Shown here in pieces: positions 1 through 5,956 of a DNA stretch of 32,158 nucleotides. Source of the stretch: Pelomyxa schiedti. Taxonomy: Eukaryota > Protista > Evosea. Each line of letters opens with the position of its first letter. Position 1 is the first letter of the stretch. The stretch is taken from positions 1 through 32,158 of the forward strand of contig JAHLWZ010000994.1 in assembly GCA_020536535.1 (NCBI GenBank). The letters run 5' to 3'. The position numbers and the translations under genes are program-made. The notes under the pieces were generated by a model. That model did not search any database. It worked only from the letters and a program-made list of their open reading frames with translations, and was not told the DNA's origin.

Positions 1-762
1 ATGAGCAGTTCTCCCACAATTGAGCAATTCCGGTCCACACTGCAATCCTTCGCCGGTATGTGTGACTGTTAATGGCTCTTTTTTTTTTGTTTTTTCCAAA
101 CTTGTAGTGTGGTCAACTTGTTATCTTTTTTTATTATTTTTCTCCCATAGTGTAGATGACAGAGACTGGGAGAAGTACCACACCCCTAGGAATTTGGTTC
201 TTGCTATGGTACCACTTTTTCATTAGTATTGCCCTTTTTGTTTAGGATTAATCCGGATGTACACCACAAAACTTGTATGAGTGTAGGTTGGTGAAGTTGG
301 CGAGCTTGCTGAATGCTTTCAGTGGCGTGATGACATGACTGTTGGATTACCAAGAAAGCCTCTCCCTTTTAATGCAATATTAACGGAACCACAACCACAT
401 AAAATAAATCAGCACACCATTTTCCGAATAGCTTCTGCAACGCTTCTTGCATCACCCGCTTTTACTGAGTTTGCATTCTGTATCTAATAATGCTGTCCTC
501 AAATAGATTGCACACCGGAAGAGAAGGAACACATAGGTGAAGAGATAAGTGATATCTTCCTCTATCTGGTTCGGCTTGCTGACAAGTGCGGCATTGATCT
601 ACCAGCAGCGGCAGAAAGAAAGGTATTCCTGTTATACTTCAACTGAGAGCACCCACTCATTTGCCTTCTTTCCAGATTCGCCTCAATGGAATAAAGTATC
701 CAGCTGATGAAGTGAGAGGATCGAGAAAAAAGTACACGGAATATCACTCACACAAATCATAA
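1..762 (+). CDS. DCTPP1: dCTP pyrophosphatase 1-like (MazG-like all-alpha NTP pyrophosphatase), 5 exons
   Basis: Exons ~1-55, 156-208, 287-353, 507-622 and 675-762 splice to MSSSPTIEQFRSTLQSFADDRDWEKYHTPRNLVLAMVGEVGELAECFQWR...EEKEHIGEEISDIFLYLVRLADKCGIDLPAAAERKIRLNGIKYPADEVRGSRKKY. These are the RDWxxFHxPRNL, GEVGEL and EExSD motifs of the DCTPP1 family. The intron 3 donor is atypical. Confidence 0.92.
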
Positions 763-806
763 GAACTAATAACAAACGGGAATTTATTTCCCTATCTTCC
801 AAAATT

Positions 807-3568
807 TTACATTGTGCTACACTTGTCTTTTTGTGGTATTGGTTGTGATGTGGGTTTGGCTGCTTGACAGCGGTTCAGTTCATACAGTACCAATTCCATA
901 AAAGAGTCTGTCTTTGTACTGAGTTTATATTACCAGTCAGAACCGTAGAATGTGTAATAGAAATGAAATTACCGAGTCCGTGAACTTATTTCAATGAAAG
1001 AACAACCAATTGTTTTGGAAAGAGCAATGCCATCGGATCTGGGTACTTGCCGTAAGGGTTCAAGGTCAACCTAAATGTGTGGCTTGGTACTGGAAACCAC
1101 AATATATTTCCACATCCCTATCTACCTTTGTGCCGCAAATTATGAGTGCCGGCCAGTAGGAGGGATAGGAAGAGCACATATCTCGGATTCTTCTAAGCCC
1201 ACCTATGTACTTGGCTAGGTTTTTAAAAGATTGCATGTCTGTTATGCTGTAGAGGAAGACCCAAGCATCAGCTCTGGTAACGTCATATTCTCTAAATGGA
1301 CTTCGAAACCTGTTAGTATTTGAATTCTCTCACAAGTGTAACCTGATCGCAAACTCGTCAGTTGTATCATAAATTATCCACCTAGTTGAGGGCTTGTCAA
1401 TATCAAAGGACTTAGACTGGATGGACATAACTTGATTGTGGTAGAGTCGGGGCAAGTCATGGAACGACTGAAAGTGTCATCAATGTCACTATCCCAGTTT
1501 TCAACACTGGAAATTTATGAGTACAAGAGCATGCAATCTTTAGAGTACAATTTATCTGTGGCCAATAAAATCGCCAGTGCTGACTACAAGTTATTAGGCA
1601 AGTGGGTGTCCCATGAATTTAGTAGTTCGAACCTTTCCAACACCGCAGCTTCCTACGAATATTTCCTTAGGATTCCAATTACTTAGAAAAAATTGAACTC
1701 ACCTAAGAAACTCACTTTGACACCCTCGGAATAGTTTGCGTCGATCTAAAAGGAATGAGGAAAAATGATTGTGGTTAGACACTGATGTTACTGGTTTTAC
1801 TATCGACTCAGGTTTTCCCTTGATACGGACAGACTCCCTCTTCATTGAAAGCTGATAATATACCTCTTTCCAGAATGAATATCTTCGAGATTTCGTTGCA
1901 CTTTGTTCATAATAATCCATGGTGTCTTCTGAGTGTACCTGTAACTTTAATGAACACCGAGTACATTACAACGATAACTCCCAACCAAAAACGCAACATG
2001 AGGTTTCCATAAATGCGGCTGAATGCCGATTCGCCTCAAGTTTCTTGACACGCGAAGCACTCTCCCAAGGTCACCCGCTCTAGGGCACAGTCAATAATAA
2101 GAAGTGAGGAAGCAATCCCTACCCAAGGTATGATAAAATTTTTGCAAGAATGTCACCAGGAAAATCTATGAAGTCCCCATTTGGTGTGCCAGATTCAACT
2201 CCGCCATAATAGTTTATTTTTAAAAGAGTTGAGGTGCTGGTGGTGGAGTTCAAACTCCCACCAAATATCCAAGCAGTGTTGTTATGCTGAACTGTGGATG
2301 CAAAGGAAATAGGGATATATCTGCTTCCTTCCAACTCGATATGGAACCATAATCTGGTCAATGGGAAATACAAGAATGTAACACCTTTTTTTTAAAAAAA
2401 ACAATGAGAAGAACGAAAATGTGGAGGTTAAAACTTGCTCCAATAAAGCAAATGCAATCGGAAAAAGCAATTGCTGTTACTCCCTCAAGTAAACAGTTTG
2501 TTGGAAGTGGAAGTGCCTCCCAGGACATGTGTTCTGGGTCAAGTGATAAGGAAACTAGTTCTTGTTTTGACCCGGGAGTGGGAACTGGGGCAATTTTAGA
2601 GCTGCAACAACCTCGTAATAAAGGAAACTACAGAAGAGTACAAAGAGTCGGGACATGAAATACGAGGCTGTGAAATTCGGATGAAAATTGCAAATGCCAA
2701 TTGGGTGCAGTTGACACCACTTCATGGTTTCCAAATTGAGTTGGTATAAGTCCGCGCAAGCTCCGGAAGTTGTAAATCCACCATATGTGTACATACATTC
2801 CTGGTGTATTTGTGATTAGGTGCAGAAACAAATCCACAAGTCCCCTTTCTAGAGTGAACACATAAAGGTCAAAAAATGGAACGGGAATCGCCCAAAGAAA
2901 GAAAGAATCAAAGAATAGACAACCAAATGTCGCCAACCAACCTGGTGCACAAAAGCATAGTGCCCTGATAGAACAGGAGGGCTATTCTTTGTCTTAACAC
3001 CACGCCAGACCCCTGTCCCATAATACACCCACACCATCACCCCTCTCTCACTTTCCTCGTCGCTTTTCACAGTCCCAACCAGACTCTCAGCATCAGCTGC
3101 TTGGGGGCGAGGGAAGCCGCCCCAAACGTACAGACGCGAATTATGGGAGACGCAGCTCGAGCCCACCAGGCCCGTGGCCGGGCACCCTGCGCCTCGGTCC
3201 CACCGAGGCACCCACAATTTGGTGGCGAGGGAGCACTCCCACGTCGCCTCCGTGCTTCTGCCCCCAACCTGCGACGCAGTGTCTGCATCTGCTTCCCCCG
3301 ACGTTGCGGGATCCCCTTTGGTTAGCGCCGCGATTGGTCCCCAGGAGGTACTAGGCGTGTCCCACCGGTGGCCCCCGCAGACCACCATGCAGTCAGATTG
3401 GAGGAGACCAGCCACCTAGACCCGTTGGCATGTTGTTCCCATGATGGGGAAATTGGCAACAAACAGTAAGTAACTTACATGAGAGTGACAACGGGGAGGC
3501 GAAAACAACGACCAGGCCAACGACTCCTCGGTCTCGTCGGTTACCCACACCGACCCACAACTGGTCAT
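807..3568 (-). CDS. Kelch-repeat + F-box + divergent Ras-like GTPase + CaaX fusion protein (multi-exon)
   Basis: ATG at 3568 (MTSCGSVW...PPRCHSH|VAGLLQSDCMVVCGG). Kelch blades: RLYVWGG, MYTYGG..DLYQLNLETMKW, TAWIFGG. F-box: FIDFPGDILAKILSYLGAGDLGRVLRVSRNLRRIGIQPHLWK (~2180-2005). Ras-like domain: VKVSFLGSCGVGKS...DAWVFLYSITDMQSF...LIICGTKVDL...FIEISSRT, ending KDKCSTM-stop at 807-809. All junctions I traced are phase-compatible GT-AG. Confidence 0.85.
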
Positions 3569-3618
3569 TATGCGAAAAAATCGACAGAGTAGAAACGGAA
3601 AAACCAAAAAAAACTTTT

Positions 3619-5301
3619 TCAGTAATTGTTCCTCCTTTTCTTTGGTAGTGGTGGGCATGGAGTGGACGGTGTTGAAGCGGCGGTGGATGTGTTTGTGCTC
3701 GATGCTTGTGATACACTTGGGGTATGTTGTGTGGTAGTGGTGGTGGTGGTTGTTGAGCCATGGGAGGCTGAGTGGGGGAAACACATAGATAGAAGCTTGA
3801 GCATTGCCTGCTGATTACCGGCCAGGGCGGCCTTCTCCCAAAGTGCACGTGCTTTGTCCATATCTTTAGGTACATATATTCCGAGTTCAAACAGAAGCCC
3901 AAGCCTGAGGATGGAGTCTGAATTGCCGCTATTAATGACTTGGTCATAGAGGAAGTTGGCTAGGCTCAGGTTTTTCTCTACACCCAGGCCGGATTCATAG
4001 CACAAAGCCATAGTAACTTTTGCGTCTGGGTTGTCAGCATCCACAGCCTTCTTCAGAATAGCTATTGCTTTGTTTATGTCACGAGTTACGTTGGGAGCAC
4101 CCATTAAGAGACGCAGGCCCATTTTAGCCATCGCATCATCATTACCCTCGTTGCATGCCCTTTGGAGGAGTGACAAAGATTTGTTCATATCCGCTGGAAC
4201 TCCAATGCCAGTCTGATAGTAGTCACTCAGGGTAACCATGGCATCAGTATCTCCCACCTCAACGGCCTTGTTCAGGAAAAAAGCTGATTGATTGTAATCT
4301 TTTTCAACTCCTGTACCAGCCCTATAGTATCGAGCAAGCCGACGCATTGCAGGCGCGTAACCGCAGTTTGAAGCTCTGAGTAATAACGACACTGCTTTTG
4401 TTGGATTGGTTGGAACTCCGTCGCCGGTCATATAGTGCTCCCCAAGCTGATCCAATGCTTTTACACTCCCTGCTTCTGCAGACCTCTCATAAAGCTCGAT
4501 TGCCTTTGCAACATCTTTGTCAATTCCTTCTCCTTCCTCATAGCAAAGGGCCATATTCCACATTGCATCTGCATTGCCTGCTGCAACGGCCTTTCGCAGG
4601 AGTGCAAAACCTTTGACAAGATCCTTGGGTACTCCTTCGCCGCGCAGATAATATTTACTGAGATAGAGCTCAGAACGCCACCCAATTTCTGGGTCCCAAT
4701 ATTTTGTAACAGCAGCTCTCTGGAATAAATCAATTTCCTTTGCTACATCACGTGCAACTCCTTGGCAAGTTGCATAAATCACCCCAAGGTTAAGCATTGC
4801 AGCAGCATCTCCCATATCGATAGCTTTCTGCAGTAAGGCAACCGCTCTGCCCGAATTGAAACCAACGCCTTCACCACGCAAATAGCACATTCCCAACACC
4901 TGCAGTGCTTTGCTATCTCCAGCATCCGCAGCCCTCTGAAGATAAGGAATCGCGCTGGCCGGATCTGCCCGCACCCCTTTGCCATGAAGAAAGCATTCAG
5001 CAAGAGCCACCATTGCCTTTGCGTTTCCAGCGTCCGCTGCCTGGCGGTAATACTGCAAGGCCATGGCAGGATTCGAGGCAGTTCCGGCGCCTTCCATGTA
5101 CGCGCGCCCGAGCTCATACATCATTCCTGGGTCACCATTGGCCGCTGCAATGTGATACATGGCGAGTCCCAGGGGCTCGTTCGTGCCAATCTCCATCGTC
5201 AGGTTCAAGTTGACATCCTGGCCAGTCTCCTCACATTGCCTGAAAAGTCCCTGTATTTGACGCTCAGCTTGCTGAGCAAGTTCCTGCATGTGTGCCTGCA
5301 T
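3619..5301 (-). CDS. Sel1-like repeat (SLR) protein, about 12 repeats, with Thr/Ser-rich tail
   Basis: Uninterrupted 560-aa ORF with ~36-aa repeats of the form AMxxLGxxYxxGxGVxxDxxKAxxLxxKAAxAG. An acceptor-like 'cacag' just upstream of the ATG means an additional 5' exon is possible. Confidence 0.93.
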   Translation of the reverse strand: MQAHMQELAQQAERQIQGLFRQCEETGQDVNLNLTMEIGTNEPLGLAMYHIAAANGDPGMMYELGRAYMEGAGTASNPAMALQYYRQAADAGNAKAMVALAECFLHGKGVRADPASAIPYLQRAADAGDSKALQVLGMCYLRGEGVGFNSGRAVALLQKAIDMGDAAAMLNLGVIYATCQGVARDVAKEIDLFQRAAVTKYWDPEIGWRSELYLSKYYLRGEGVPKDLVKGFALLRKAVAAGNADAMWNMALCYEEGEGIDKDVAKAIELYERSAEAGSVKALDQLGEHYMTGDGVPTNPTKAVSLLLRASNCGYAPAMRRLARYYRAGTGVEKDYNQSAFFLNKAVEVGDTDAMVTLSDYYQTGIGVPADMNKSLSLLQRACNEGNDDAMAKMGLRLLMGAPNVTRDINKAIAILKKAVDADNPDAKVTMALCYESGLGVEKNLSLANFLYDQVINSGNSDSILRLGLLFELGIYVPKDMDKARALWEKAALAGNQQAMLKLLSMCFPHSASHGSTTTTTTTTQHTPSVSQASSTNTSTAASTPSTPCPPLPKKRRNNY

Positions 5302-5956
5302 GTACGCCTGTGCACGGTAAGAAAGAAATAGAGCAATTTAATTAACAAGGCATATGTCGCCGTTACTAGTAGCACTTATATTAAAATTATTGATACAAAG
5401 CATTGTTAACGGCAAACCCTAGATCGTAGTCTCGCTGCGGAATTATGCTACAATGTATAAATGTGTGCTAACGCTGTAAAAGCAATTAGAAAATAAAAAC
5501 GGTCACGAAGAAACTACCTGCAGTGGTCGTCCTCGACAATTTATTAATTTATTTGATCTTTGTTGAGTATTTAAGCCCGAAAAACGTTGGTACATTATGT
5601 GGTCAGGTCACCGCATCATTTAGTTTTGGCCCTTCTTCCAAGAACAATAATCGGACAAGAGACAGCTTGAGACCAGAAGCACCGCATTCTGGAGAAAACA
5701 ATTCTCATGAACGCTGGCTACTATTGGTGCTTCTTCAGTGTCAAAGGATTGTGGATTTGCAAGGTGAGTCGGTCTGAGAAAAAGGACTCACCCCGACCAG
5801 GGTTAGTGCACCATTGTCAGATTCAGTGGCCATGTGTGTCAATAGCAAAAGCCCGGTTTGAGGGCTGTTAGGCCATGCTTGGCCAAATGAACACTTTTTT
5901 TTGACTCAAAAAAAATGTTGGGTTGTAGGATTGGAGATTCATGCTTTATACAACTT

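Follow-up and report, generated by a model that had tools for sequence, protein, structure and literature searches.

The animal Kelch-BTB/BACK protein LZTR1 is a CUL3 adaptor for RIT1, MRAS and RAS. FBXO42 and the plant F-box/Kelch proteins combine an F-box and a Kelch propeller in a single SCF substrate receptor, in which the F-box lies N-terminal to the propeller and both a GTPase domain and a lipid anchor are absent. In RhoBTB and Rab40, a small GTPase and a cullin-docking module share one chain, with a prenylated GTPase in Rab40 and an atypical one in RhoBTB (PMC6744581, PMC6088270). The docking module of these proteins is a BTB domain (CUL3) or a SOCS box (CUL5) rather than an F-box, the GTPase is N-terminal and of Rho/Rab type, and there is no propeller.

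Here we describe a gene, found in a 32,158-nt window (the whole stretch of DNA analysed), which belongs to a family whose proteins combine, in one chain, a Kelch propeller with an F-box, a Ras-like domain and a CaaX box at the C-terminus. The host, Pelomyxa schiedti, is an anaerobic amoeba. In the family, as in LZTR1, a propeller is coupled both to a cullin ligase and to Ras proteins; unlike the family, LZTR1 engages its cullin via BTB (CUL3) and not an F-box (CUL1), and has neither a fused Ras domain nor a CaaX box. A preliminary description of the locus held that this architecture is not known from characterised proteins. That claim stands, as no description of a Kelch-F-box-Ras-CaaX architecture was found in the literature; the design is nevertheless present in sequence databases.

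Gene model and RNA contigs

The gene of the window (the window copy) lies on the minus strand at 807..3568 and comprises 15 exons and 14 introns. The predicted product is 657-666 aa, depending on the cut chosen for intron 12 (phase/stop check). Six Kelch blades come first; then follow an F-box shared between two exons, a linker, the Ras-like domain and CSTM at the C-terminus. The four parts (Kelch, F-box, Ras-like, CaaX) are colinear and phase-compatible. Homology searches were run exon by exon, the joined frame being a matter of the phase and stop check only, and the single-exon Pfam matches are weak yet consistent. The features are as follows.

3479..3568, minus: exon 1, 90 nt, ATG at 3568; predicted, outside RNA cover; exon 1/2 boundary motif and phase as in paralog P0008
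3478-3416, minus: intron 1, predicted, 63 nt, GT-AG, directly after exon 1
2942..3415, minus: exon 2, 474 nt, blades 1-2 of the Kelch propeller, the beginning of blade 3, and an insert rich in GC; weak Pfam Kelch_2 and Kelch_6; RNA contigs over the region at 2941-3048 and 3149-3299
2632..2800, minus: exon 3, 169 nt, a length shared with P0003 and P0001; blades 3-4 of the Kelch propeller; Pfam match to a Kelch-repeat domain at E=3.9e-6; KLHDC10 the top solved match, E=2e-6; introns on both sides confirmed by RNA
2435..2584, minus: exon 4, 150 nt if the in-frame GT donor at 2434 is used; in the RNA contig 146 nt with a GC donor at 2438
2123..2384, minus: exon 5, 262 nt, covering Kelch blades 5-6 and, after them, half one of the F-box (~2178-2123); Pfam Kelch_6, E=0.007; aligned with six paralogs; RNA contigs at 2276-2383 and 2123-2271
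1986..2079, minus: exon 6, 94 nt, remaining half of the F-box; Pfam F-box-like, E=0.0027; introns on both sides confirmed by X3 record 8
1792..1938, minus: exon 7, 147 nt, linker from F-box to Ras-like domain, weakly homologous to paralog linkers; X3 record 8 at 1873-1936, X1 record 1 at 1792-1933
1703..1745, minus: exon 8, 43 nt, opening beta strand of the Ras-like domain plus the first P-loop Gly; RNA and frame
1633..1652, minus: exon 9, 20-nt micro-exon, P-loop core; 17 extra letters within the X1 joint map to 1635-1651
1549..1583, minus: exon 10, 35 nt, P-loop Ser and helix 1; paralog exon equally long
1432..1506, minus: exon 11, 75 nt, switch I region, including its conserved Thr, and beta 2; RNA and frame
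1343..1381, minus: exon 12, 39 nt (as in P0003), beta 3 and degenerate G3 DTTD at 1368-1357
1310..1342, minus: putative intron 12 with an in-frame TGA at 1332-1330; donor position and phase as in P0003 intron 12
1126..1309, minus: exon 13, 184 nt (33-nt cut of intron 12) or 166 nt (51-nt cut), helix 2 to beta 5, family-specific insert before G4, G4 Thr-Lys; Pfam Ras, E=1.9e-4; 91 bits against the family profile
973..1070, minus: exon 14, 98 nt, G4 Val-Asp and degenerate G5 SSR at 986-978; Pfam Ras, E=0.0096; flanking introns 13 and 14 both spliced in three RNA runs
807..918, minus: exon 15, 112 nt, final helix, then a short two-Lys tail, CSTM at 821-810, TAA at 809-807; from frame; RNA contigs extend to 782 and 814

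RNA contigs confirm the splicing of 11 of the 14 introns, and all introns other than intron 12 and that between exons 4 and 5 have canonical signals. Between them the contigs give continuous cover from the F-box exons, by way of the linker, as far as the stop codon: X3 record 8 bridges the F-box to the linker, X1 record 1 bridges the linker to the Ras-like domain and the stop, and the two share 61 nt in exon 7. All RNA for the locus comes from one sample, and rare forms are dropped by the contigs. A third contig, X2, retains three introns besides intron 12, which shows that unspliced RNA is common in these libraries.

Two adjacent genes, one for Kelch and F-box and a separate one for Ras, could in principle have been misread as one, given that each RNA contig covers only part of the model and that contig X2 begins at 1978 with a template-switch oligo. 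The oligo, however, recurs at 4879, within the reading frame of the Sel1 neighbour, and is therefore not a mark of a transcript start. The linker exon shared by the two contigs joins the F-box to Ras and the stop, no ATG-led start or upstream stop pattern marks off Ras as a gene of its own, and the P-loop, spread over three exons, continues the linker frame. The three domains also occur together in seven paralog models and in an independent transcript from Soliformovum irregulare. The two-gene reading is the least probable of those weighed here, and the single gene of the preliminary description is supported. An exact look-up of public gene calls found no record for the Sel1 neighbour.

The Ras-like domain begins with an intact G1 P-loop (GxxxxGK[ST]). 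Exons 8, 9 and 10 each supply part of it, and X1 record 1 contains their junctions. In place of G3 DxxG and the catalytic Gln, the window copy reads DTTD and then Glu, and in place of G4 NKxD and G5 SAK it reads TKVD and SSR. The Ras-like fold had been called complete; by its motifs it is not, with only G1 kept intact among these four. Paralogs are themselves variable, with NKCD in 5/7 and TKCD in 2/7, SAK kept in only 3/7, and the G3 Gly lost in most. The profile of exon 13 has M-Ras/RIT1 as its top solved matches; a specific M-Ras/RIT1 tie to LZTR1 substrates was nevertheless dropped, since whole Ras domains match H/K/N-Ras best.

The terminal CSTM reported previously was confirmed, its codons being followed directly by TAA. 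It has Cys at position -4 and a farnesyltransferase-selecting last residue; the two residues between, Ser and Thr, are non-aliphatic, so that prenylation is predicted less securely. All seven paralogs and the S. irregulare protein also end in a CaaX box.

The F-box motif is split by an intron, and its second half, searched by itself, reaches 17.9 bits, below the Pfam cut-off of 24.3, while the F-boxes of whole paralog proteins score 35-46 bits. This half is 39-52% identical to the paralog halves, with invariant Val-Ser and Leu-Trp columns. The Kelch exons give weak, generic Kelch matches only, and two blades have lost the Gly-Gly motif. Among solved structures, KLHDC10, KLHDC3 and KLHDC2 are their best matches, all weak, and the LZTR1 Kelch domain was not found as the nearest solved relative of these exons.

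The Pelomyxa family and its counterparts in other organisms

Exactly eight Kelch-F-box-Ras-CaaX loci are present in the assembly, scoring 87-97 bits with a family profile that was built on the Ras piece and includes the window copy; the next locus scores 41. The window copy (91 bits) carries the family signature, a Tyr..Trp-Pro insert before G4, and keeps all eight invariant columns. The other seven loci correspond exactly to GenBank proteins that contain Kelch, F-box-like and Ras domains in single models (KAH3745746.1, KAH3745773.1, KAH3761179.1, KAH3767027.1, KAH3766918.1, KAH3743125.1 and KAH3757801.1), automatically named GTPase KRas, Rit2, ras family small GTPase or hypothetical.

The window copy shares with these paralogs, in the same genome, its domain order, its exon plan, the insert before G4 and the C-terminal CaaX box. 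Tblastn searches of its exons against the seven loci gave ordered Kelch, F-box and Ras matches, and exon lengths of 169, 20, 35, 39 and 98 nt are common to the window copy and paralogs (the 20-nt and 98-nt exons each being kept in 5/7 mapped paralog models). Identity to the paralogs is, however, only 25-33% in the Kelch and Ras pieces, and the degenerate G4/G5, the two blades without Gly-Gly, the exon 4/5 phase shift and the intron 12 TGA are further differences of the window copy.

A search with the Ras-piece profile among 1.84 billion representatives gave high scores in Pelomyxa only, the other long matches being tandem-Ras proteins without Kelch or F-box. A whole-length homologue search with paralog P0003 was dominated by generic Kelch and Ras proteins and did not return the paralogs themselves.

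The same design occurs in a different amoebozoan lineage. The S. irregulare protein EP01119_P002187 (EukProt; Trinity ORF P0200), which derives from an assembled mRNA, has 621 aa with Kelch repeats, an F-box at 329-368, a Ras domain at 439-593 and a polybasic CaaX end. In contrast to the window copy, its Ras domain is near-canonical, with G1, G2, G4 and G5 intact and only the catalytic Gln replaced. Because the seven GenBank models and this transcript carry the same design, the architecture is real and already in databases. It is confirmed in two species rather than in several, since a region search with P0200 gave only a second Soliformovum isoform.

A parallel to LZTR1 had been drawn for the locus. 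It applies at the family level, the LZTR1 Kelch domain being the top solved match of both P0200 (E=7.5e-40) and P0003 (E=4.7e-27), but does not extend to the window copy's own exons. FBXO42 is also among the solved matches of P0003. The Besnoitia besnoiti 'Ras family protein' (P0181) and an environmental protein (P0179) carry a Ras domain C-terminal to a propeller, as in the family; no F-box was detected between Kelch and Ras in these two proteins (the gap in P0179 is 19 residues) or in an ESM Atlas cluster. This cluster of ~600-aa proteins, mostly from haptophytes, is a Kelch-Ras match (score 0.83) and a lead only.

Two splicing problems of the window copy

The putative intron 12, its in-frame TGA included, stays unspliced in each of the three RNA contigs over the site, giving a stop at codon 537. 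Four in-frame GT..AG excisions of the TGA segment are possible (24, 33, 42 and 51 nt, the longest extending down to 1292). A 33-nt intron would be shorter than every family intron (n=91, minimum 36 nt). TGA as a sense codon or selenocysteine was rejected: TGA terminates 3/7 paralogs, and the neighbouring 560-aa frame has none.

The second problem concerns exon 4. The one contig that spans its junction with exon 5 uses the GC donor at 2438, which shifts the frame so that a stop falls at codon 302; the in-frame GT alternative, at 2434, is 4 nt distant. In the paralogs, the exon 4/5 intron is in phase 0 and follows a 158-nt exon.

The transcripts visible from the window copy are thus all shortened by stop codons, and the splices for the full-length 657-666 aa product (GT donor at 2434; removal of the TGA segment) were not seen in the available RNA contigs. 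The preliminary description overlooked that the visible transcripts are non-productive. Of its single phase-consistent spliced frame from Kelch to CSTM, the parts, their order, the phases and 11/14 introns were borne out, but the TGA segment is retained in 3/3 contigs and the exon 4/5 contig is frame-shifted.

The retained-intron RNA might itself be the intended product, a 536-aa protein with the propeller, F-box and half of the Ras-like domain and without the lipid anchor. This form is present in all three contigs over the site, with its stop at codon 537. Half a G domain, however, would not fold, and the 120-130 codons downstream are open and conserved to the CaaX box, with introns 13 and 14 spliced in all runs. 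We consider this reading very improbable.

A far more serious possibility, if still a somewhat doubtful one, is that the window copy is a transcribed but recently disabled paralog, long a working member of the family and now producing early-ending RNAs and no full-length protein because of a one-base phase change at exon 4/5, as compared with the paralogs, and an unremoved intron 12. The TGA segment is kept in all contigs that cover it, with the other introns mostly spliced; the GC donor seen in RNA corresponds to the ancestral phase 0 of the paralogs, yet leaves exon 5 out of frame; and a 33-nt intron would fall below the family minimum. The window copy is also the most divergent of the eight, with a mean Ras-piece identity of 29.6% as compared with 31.5-38.8%. 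It is the sole locus without a matching protein among the 1.84 billion representatives searched: no annotated protein with its exon 13 was found there, whereas all seven paralogs were. Against disablement, ~660 codons over 15 exons are open, with correct phases and otherwise canonical introns, and the invariant family residues, P-loop, F-box core and CaaX box are all kept. Either problem could be bypassed in frame, by the GT donor 4 nt from the GC donor and by any of the four TGA-segment excisions, and the contigs, from a single RNA sample and lacking rare forms, include X2 with its three other retained introns.

We lean slightly towards reading the locus as a single transcription unit, the eighth in the family, that shares the family mechanism. 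With every exon open and the phases compatible, it was a coding gene until recently and may be one still. The two states considered for the window copy are leaky splicing in a gene that still codes and recent disablement.

Proposed mechanism and significance

From sequence, the family is best read as encoding a farnesyl-anchored SCF substrate receptor with an intact P-loop and, in the window copy, degenerate G3-G5 motifs. Farnesylation of the C-terminal CaaX box would hold the protein at the membrane, while the F-box would dock it on Skp1-Cul1. The six-bladed propeller would recruit substrates, possibly Ras-type GTPases, by analogy with LZTR1. The kept P-loop and the loss of the switch II Gly and Gln suggest that the fused Ras-like domain is a nucleotide-bound, poorly switching module, which would position or regulate the adaptor rather than act as a normal timer. 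The host genome encodes Skp1, cullins and three prenyltransferase beta loci, which makes a prenylated SCF adaptor a reasonable proposal. It was also considered that the family is a natural 'Rosetta stone' fusion, in which an LZTR1-like propeller reads its own fused Ras-like domain, or an adjacent membrane Ras, by nucleotide state and thereby gates a farnesyl-anchored SCF ligase, although we regard this as unlikely.

F-box/Kelch receptors were known already, as were small GTPases fused to cullin adaptors (RhoBTB, Rab40). The combination of a propeller, an F-box and a lipid-anchored Ras in one chain had not been described, although it recurs across the eight Pelomyxa loci and in another amoebozoan lineage. 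The window copy adds little beyond its membership, its value lying in a possible example of decay or of splicing control in a family member. As the better-kept members pair an LZTR1-like propeller with a classical Ras, the family could provide a simple, genetically linked model of propellers reading membrane Ras. If the reading of a propeller-gated SCF ligase were true, propeller-mediated Ras turnover would predate animals, with CUL1 used before or beside CUL3.

Gene layout and transcripts

Three-frame translation of the minus strand from 3700 to 700 gives a series of short open pieces that starts with Kelch blades and an F-box, continues through a linker into a Ras-like domain and closes with a tail whose last residues, CSTM, precede TAA at 809-807. 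Pfam searches were run exon by exon, and the joined frame was examined for phase and stop codons alone. At single-exon level the matches are weak yet consistent: Kelch families on four pieces, F-box-like on 1950-2090 (E=0.0027), and Ras on 1069-1329 (E=1.9e-4) and 972-1070 (E=0.0096). The G3, G4 and G5 motifs are degenerate, so in terms of motifs the Ras-like fold is not the complete one of the preliminary description, and the middle residues of the CaaX box (CSTM) are non-aliphatic. The gene and its neighbours are:

807-3568, minus strand: Kelch-F-box-Ras-CaaX gene, 15 exons and 14 introns
3619-5301, minus strand: Sel1-repeat protein, single exon, 560 aa, ten repeats (Pfam E=4e-84)
1-760, plus strand: small multi-exon gene upstream, on the opposite strand, resembling MazG-type nucleotide pyrophosphatase

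The exon piece 509-622 (plus strand) of the last gene matches MazG-like (Pfam E=1.8e-5), and none of the RNA contigs placed on 1-5600 covers this gene. The Sel1-repeat gene, which encodes a poly-Thr tract close to the C-terminus, is expressed (RNA contigs 3653-4879), and only 50 nt separate its TGA stop from the ATG of the Kelch gene downstream. GC content is 55% at 3001-4000 versus about 40% elsewhere in the Kelch gene. Two features fall where it is raised: the end of the Sel1 gene and, in exon 2, a low-complexity insert that separates Kelch blades.

RNA contigs from three runs (X1, X2 and X3) of a single single-cell sample were aligned over window 1-5600; the stretch is also present in the probable source DNA run. 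These contigs reveal 11 of the model's 14 introns by their splice joints, all of them short (42-55 nt, one 141), GT-AG and on the minus strand. The P-loop core is encoded by a 20-nt micro-exon (1652-1633), seen as extra letters within an RNA joint. X3 record 8 runs from the last Kelch/F-box exon (2271-2123) through the second F-box exon (2079-1984) into the linker exon (1936-1873), while in X1 record 1 the linker exon (1933-1792) is spliced via all Ras exons down to 814. The two records share 61 nt, placing the F-box and Ras parts on overlapping transcripts; no single contig from the three runs spans the whole gene. Because the overlapping contigs bridge F-box, linker and Ras exons, the locus is one transcription unit, as proposed earlier, rather than separate Kelch/F-box and Ras genes. 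The 5' end of an X2 contig at 1978 is template-switch oligo, which also occurs within the Sel1 reading frame at 4879 and thus does not mark transcript starts.

Splicing and status of the window copy

The single spliced frame described for this gene holds in domain order and phases, but the RNA forms visible here hit stops at codons 302 and 537. The first arises at the exon 4/5 junction, where the sole contig across uses a GC donor (2438) that shifts exon 5 off the reading frame. The frame would be restored by a GT donor lying 4 nt downstream, whose use is not seen in that contig. The paralog counterpart of this intron follows a 158-nt exon in phase 0; with the GC donor, exon 4 is 146 nt long and this phase is kept, so the window gene is off by one base of phase relative to its relatives at this junction.

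The second stop lies in putative intron 12. The stretch 1124-1379 is continuous in all three RNA runs and retains an in-frame TGA (1332-1330), a real stop in Pelomyxa schiedti since three of the seven paralogs terminate with it. The TGA segment has GT and AG ends, and by a local phase check each of its four possible cuts (24, 33, 42 and 51 nt) keeps the frame, giving 657-666 aa without internal stops. Its donor has the position and phase of intron 12 in the paralog P0003, and both genes have a 39-nt exon 12. The 33-nt cut leaves a 184-nt exon 13 (175-181 nt in paralogs) and would be shorter than any intron in the family (91 introns; shortest 36 nt, median 46 nt), whereas the 51-nt cut agrees with family intron sizes and separates a branch-like motif from the acceptor by 20 nt, and leaves an exon 13 of only 166 nt. 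From these sequence features, intron 12 may be excised by either the 33-nt or the 51-nt cut, neither being favoured. In the fetched stretch L012, the annotated, putative 42-nt intron 12 of KAH3745746.1 (4495-4536, switch II region) is in frame and without stop, and its 3' end is similar to the corresponding window-gene stretch.

Setting the frame-keeping cuts and the nearby GT donor beside the stops in the visible RNA forms, we lean slightly towards a coding gene with leaky splicing; that the window copy is a recently disabled paralog is a serious though somewhat less probable reading.

The family in Pelomyxa schiedti and beyond

The exon-13 peptide, searched against the Pelomyxa schiedti assembly (5337 contigs, 52 Mb), matches seven further loci; at each of these the window exons align in the order Kelch, F-box, Ras. 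A family profile built from the eight exon-13 pieces (window gene included) finds exactly eight loci at 87-97 bits in the assembly, the next scoring 41 bits. Among 1.84 billion representative proteins, its top group (82-93 bits) comprises seven Kelch-F-box-Ras paralogs, every one a Pelomyxa schiedti protein with an automatic name such as GTPase KRas or Rit2. These seven models map exactly to the seven paralog loci; of the eight loci, that of the window alone lacks a counterpart among the representatives. On single chains, Pfam detects Kelch in six of seven, F-box-like or F-box in six (none in the paralog P0001) and Ras in all; the annotation of another, P0002, shows F-box and Ras only. A CaaX box terminates all eight members, usually with Met as its last residue, and most have lost the G3 glycine. 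In the Ras piece, the window gene diverges most from the other members (mean identity 29.6%).

On the minus strand of L010 (G000:C795:26600-32600), KAH3757801.1 (312 aa) has F-box and Ras parts only; Kelch-like exon matches a short way upstream, on that strand too (L010 2862-2945 and 3259-3354), suggest that this model is probably 5'-truncated. P0007 (KAH3763732.1, Pelomyxa schiedti, 767 aa), also among the top profile matches and unrelated to the family, combines two WW domains with three Ras-domain stretches; it represents either a further unusual Ras fusion or gene models that were merged.

A search with the F-box, linker and Ras start of P0003 matched P0200, a complete 621-aa transcriptome ORF from Soliformovum irregulare:

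to residue 282: Kelch
329-368: F-box
439-593: Ras
C-terminus: polybasic CaaX end

P0200 independently confirms the design at mRNA level in a second amoebozoan lineage. The Ras domain of P0200 is close to canonical, in contrast to the Pelomyxa members. Some proteins from Besnoitia and from environmental sequences share the propeller and Ras, with no F-box detected; the nearest ESM Atlas cluster, a lead only, is also of this kind. The Kelch-F-box-Ras-CaaX architecture is thus real. It is undescribed in the literature searched, in line with the preliminary description, but is already in databases as uncharacterised entries, seven of them from Pelomyxa schiedti.

Structural relatives and proposed function

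The best solved-structure match of the propellers of P0200 (E=7.5e-40) and P0003 (E=4.7e-27) is the LZTR1 Kelch domain, followed by FBXO42 and KLHDC proteins. The parallel drawn earlier with LZTR1 is borne out for these two members, but not by the window gene's own propeller exons, which give weak, generic Kelch matches to solved structures. Whole Ras domains best match H/K/N-Ras; a tie to M-Ras/RIT1 suggested by a short exon profile was dropped on this ground.

Genes for Skp1, for several cullins and for three prenyltransferase beta subunits are present in the Pelomyxa schiedti genome and, with the LZTR1 and H/K/N-Ras matches, point to a farnesyl-anchored SCF substrate receptor as the likely function. 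Judged from sequence, substrate recruitment would fall to the propeller, with Ras-type GTPases on the same membrane as possible substrates, and the fused Ras-like domain, which may bind nucleotide and switch poorly, would position or regulate the adaptor.
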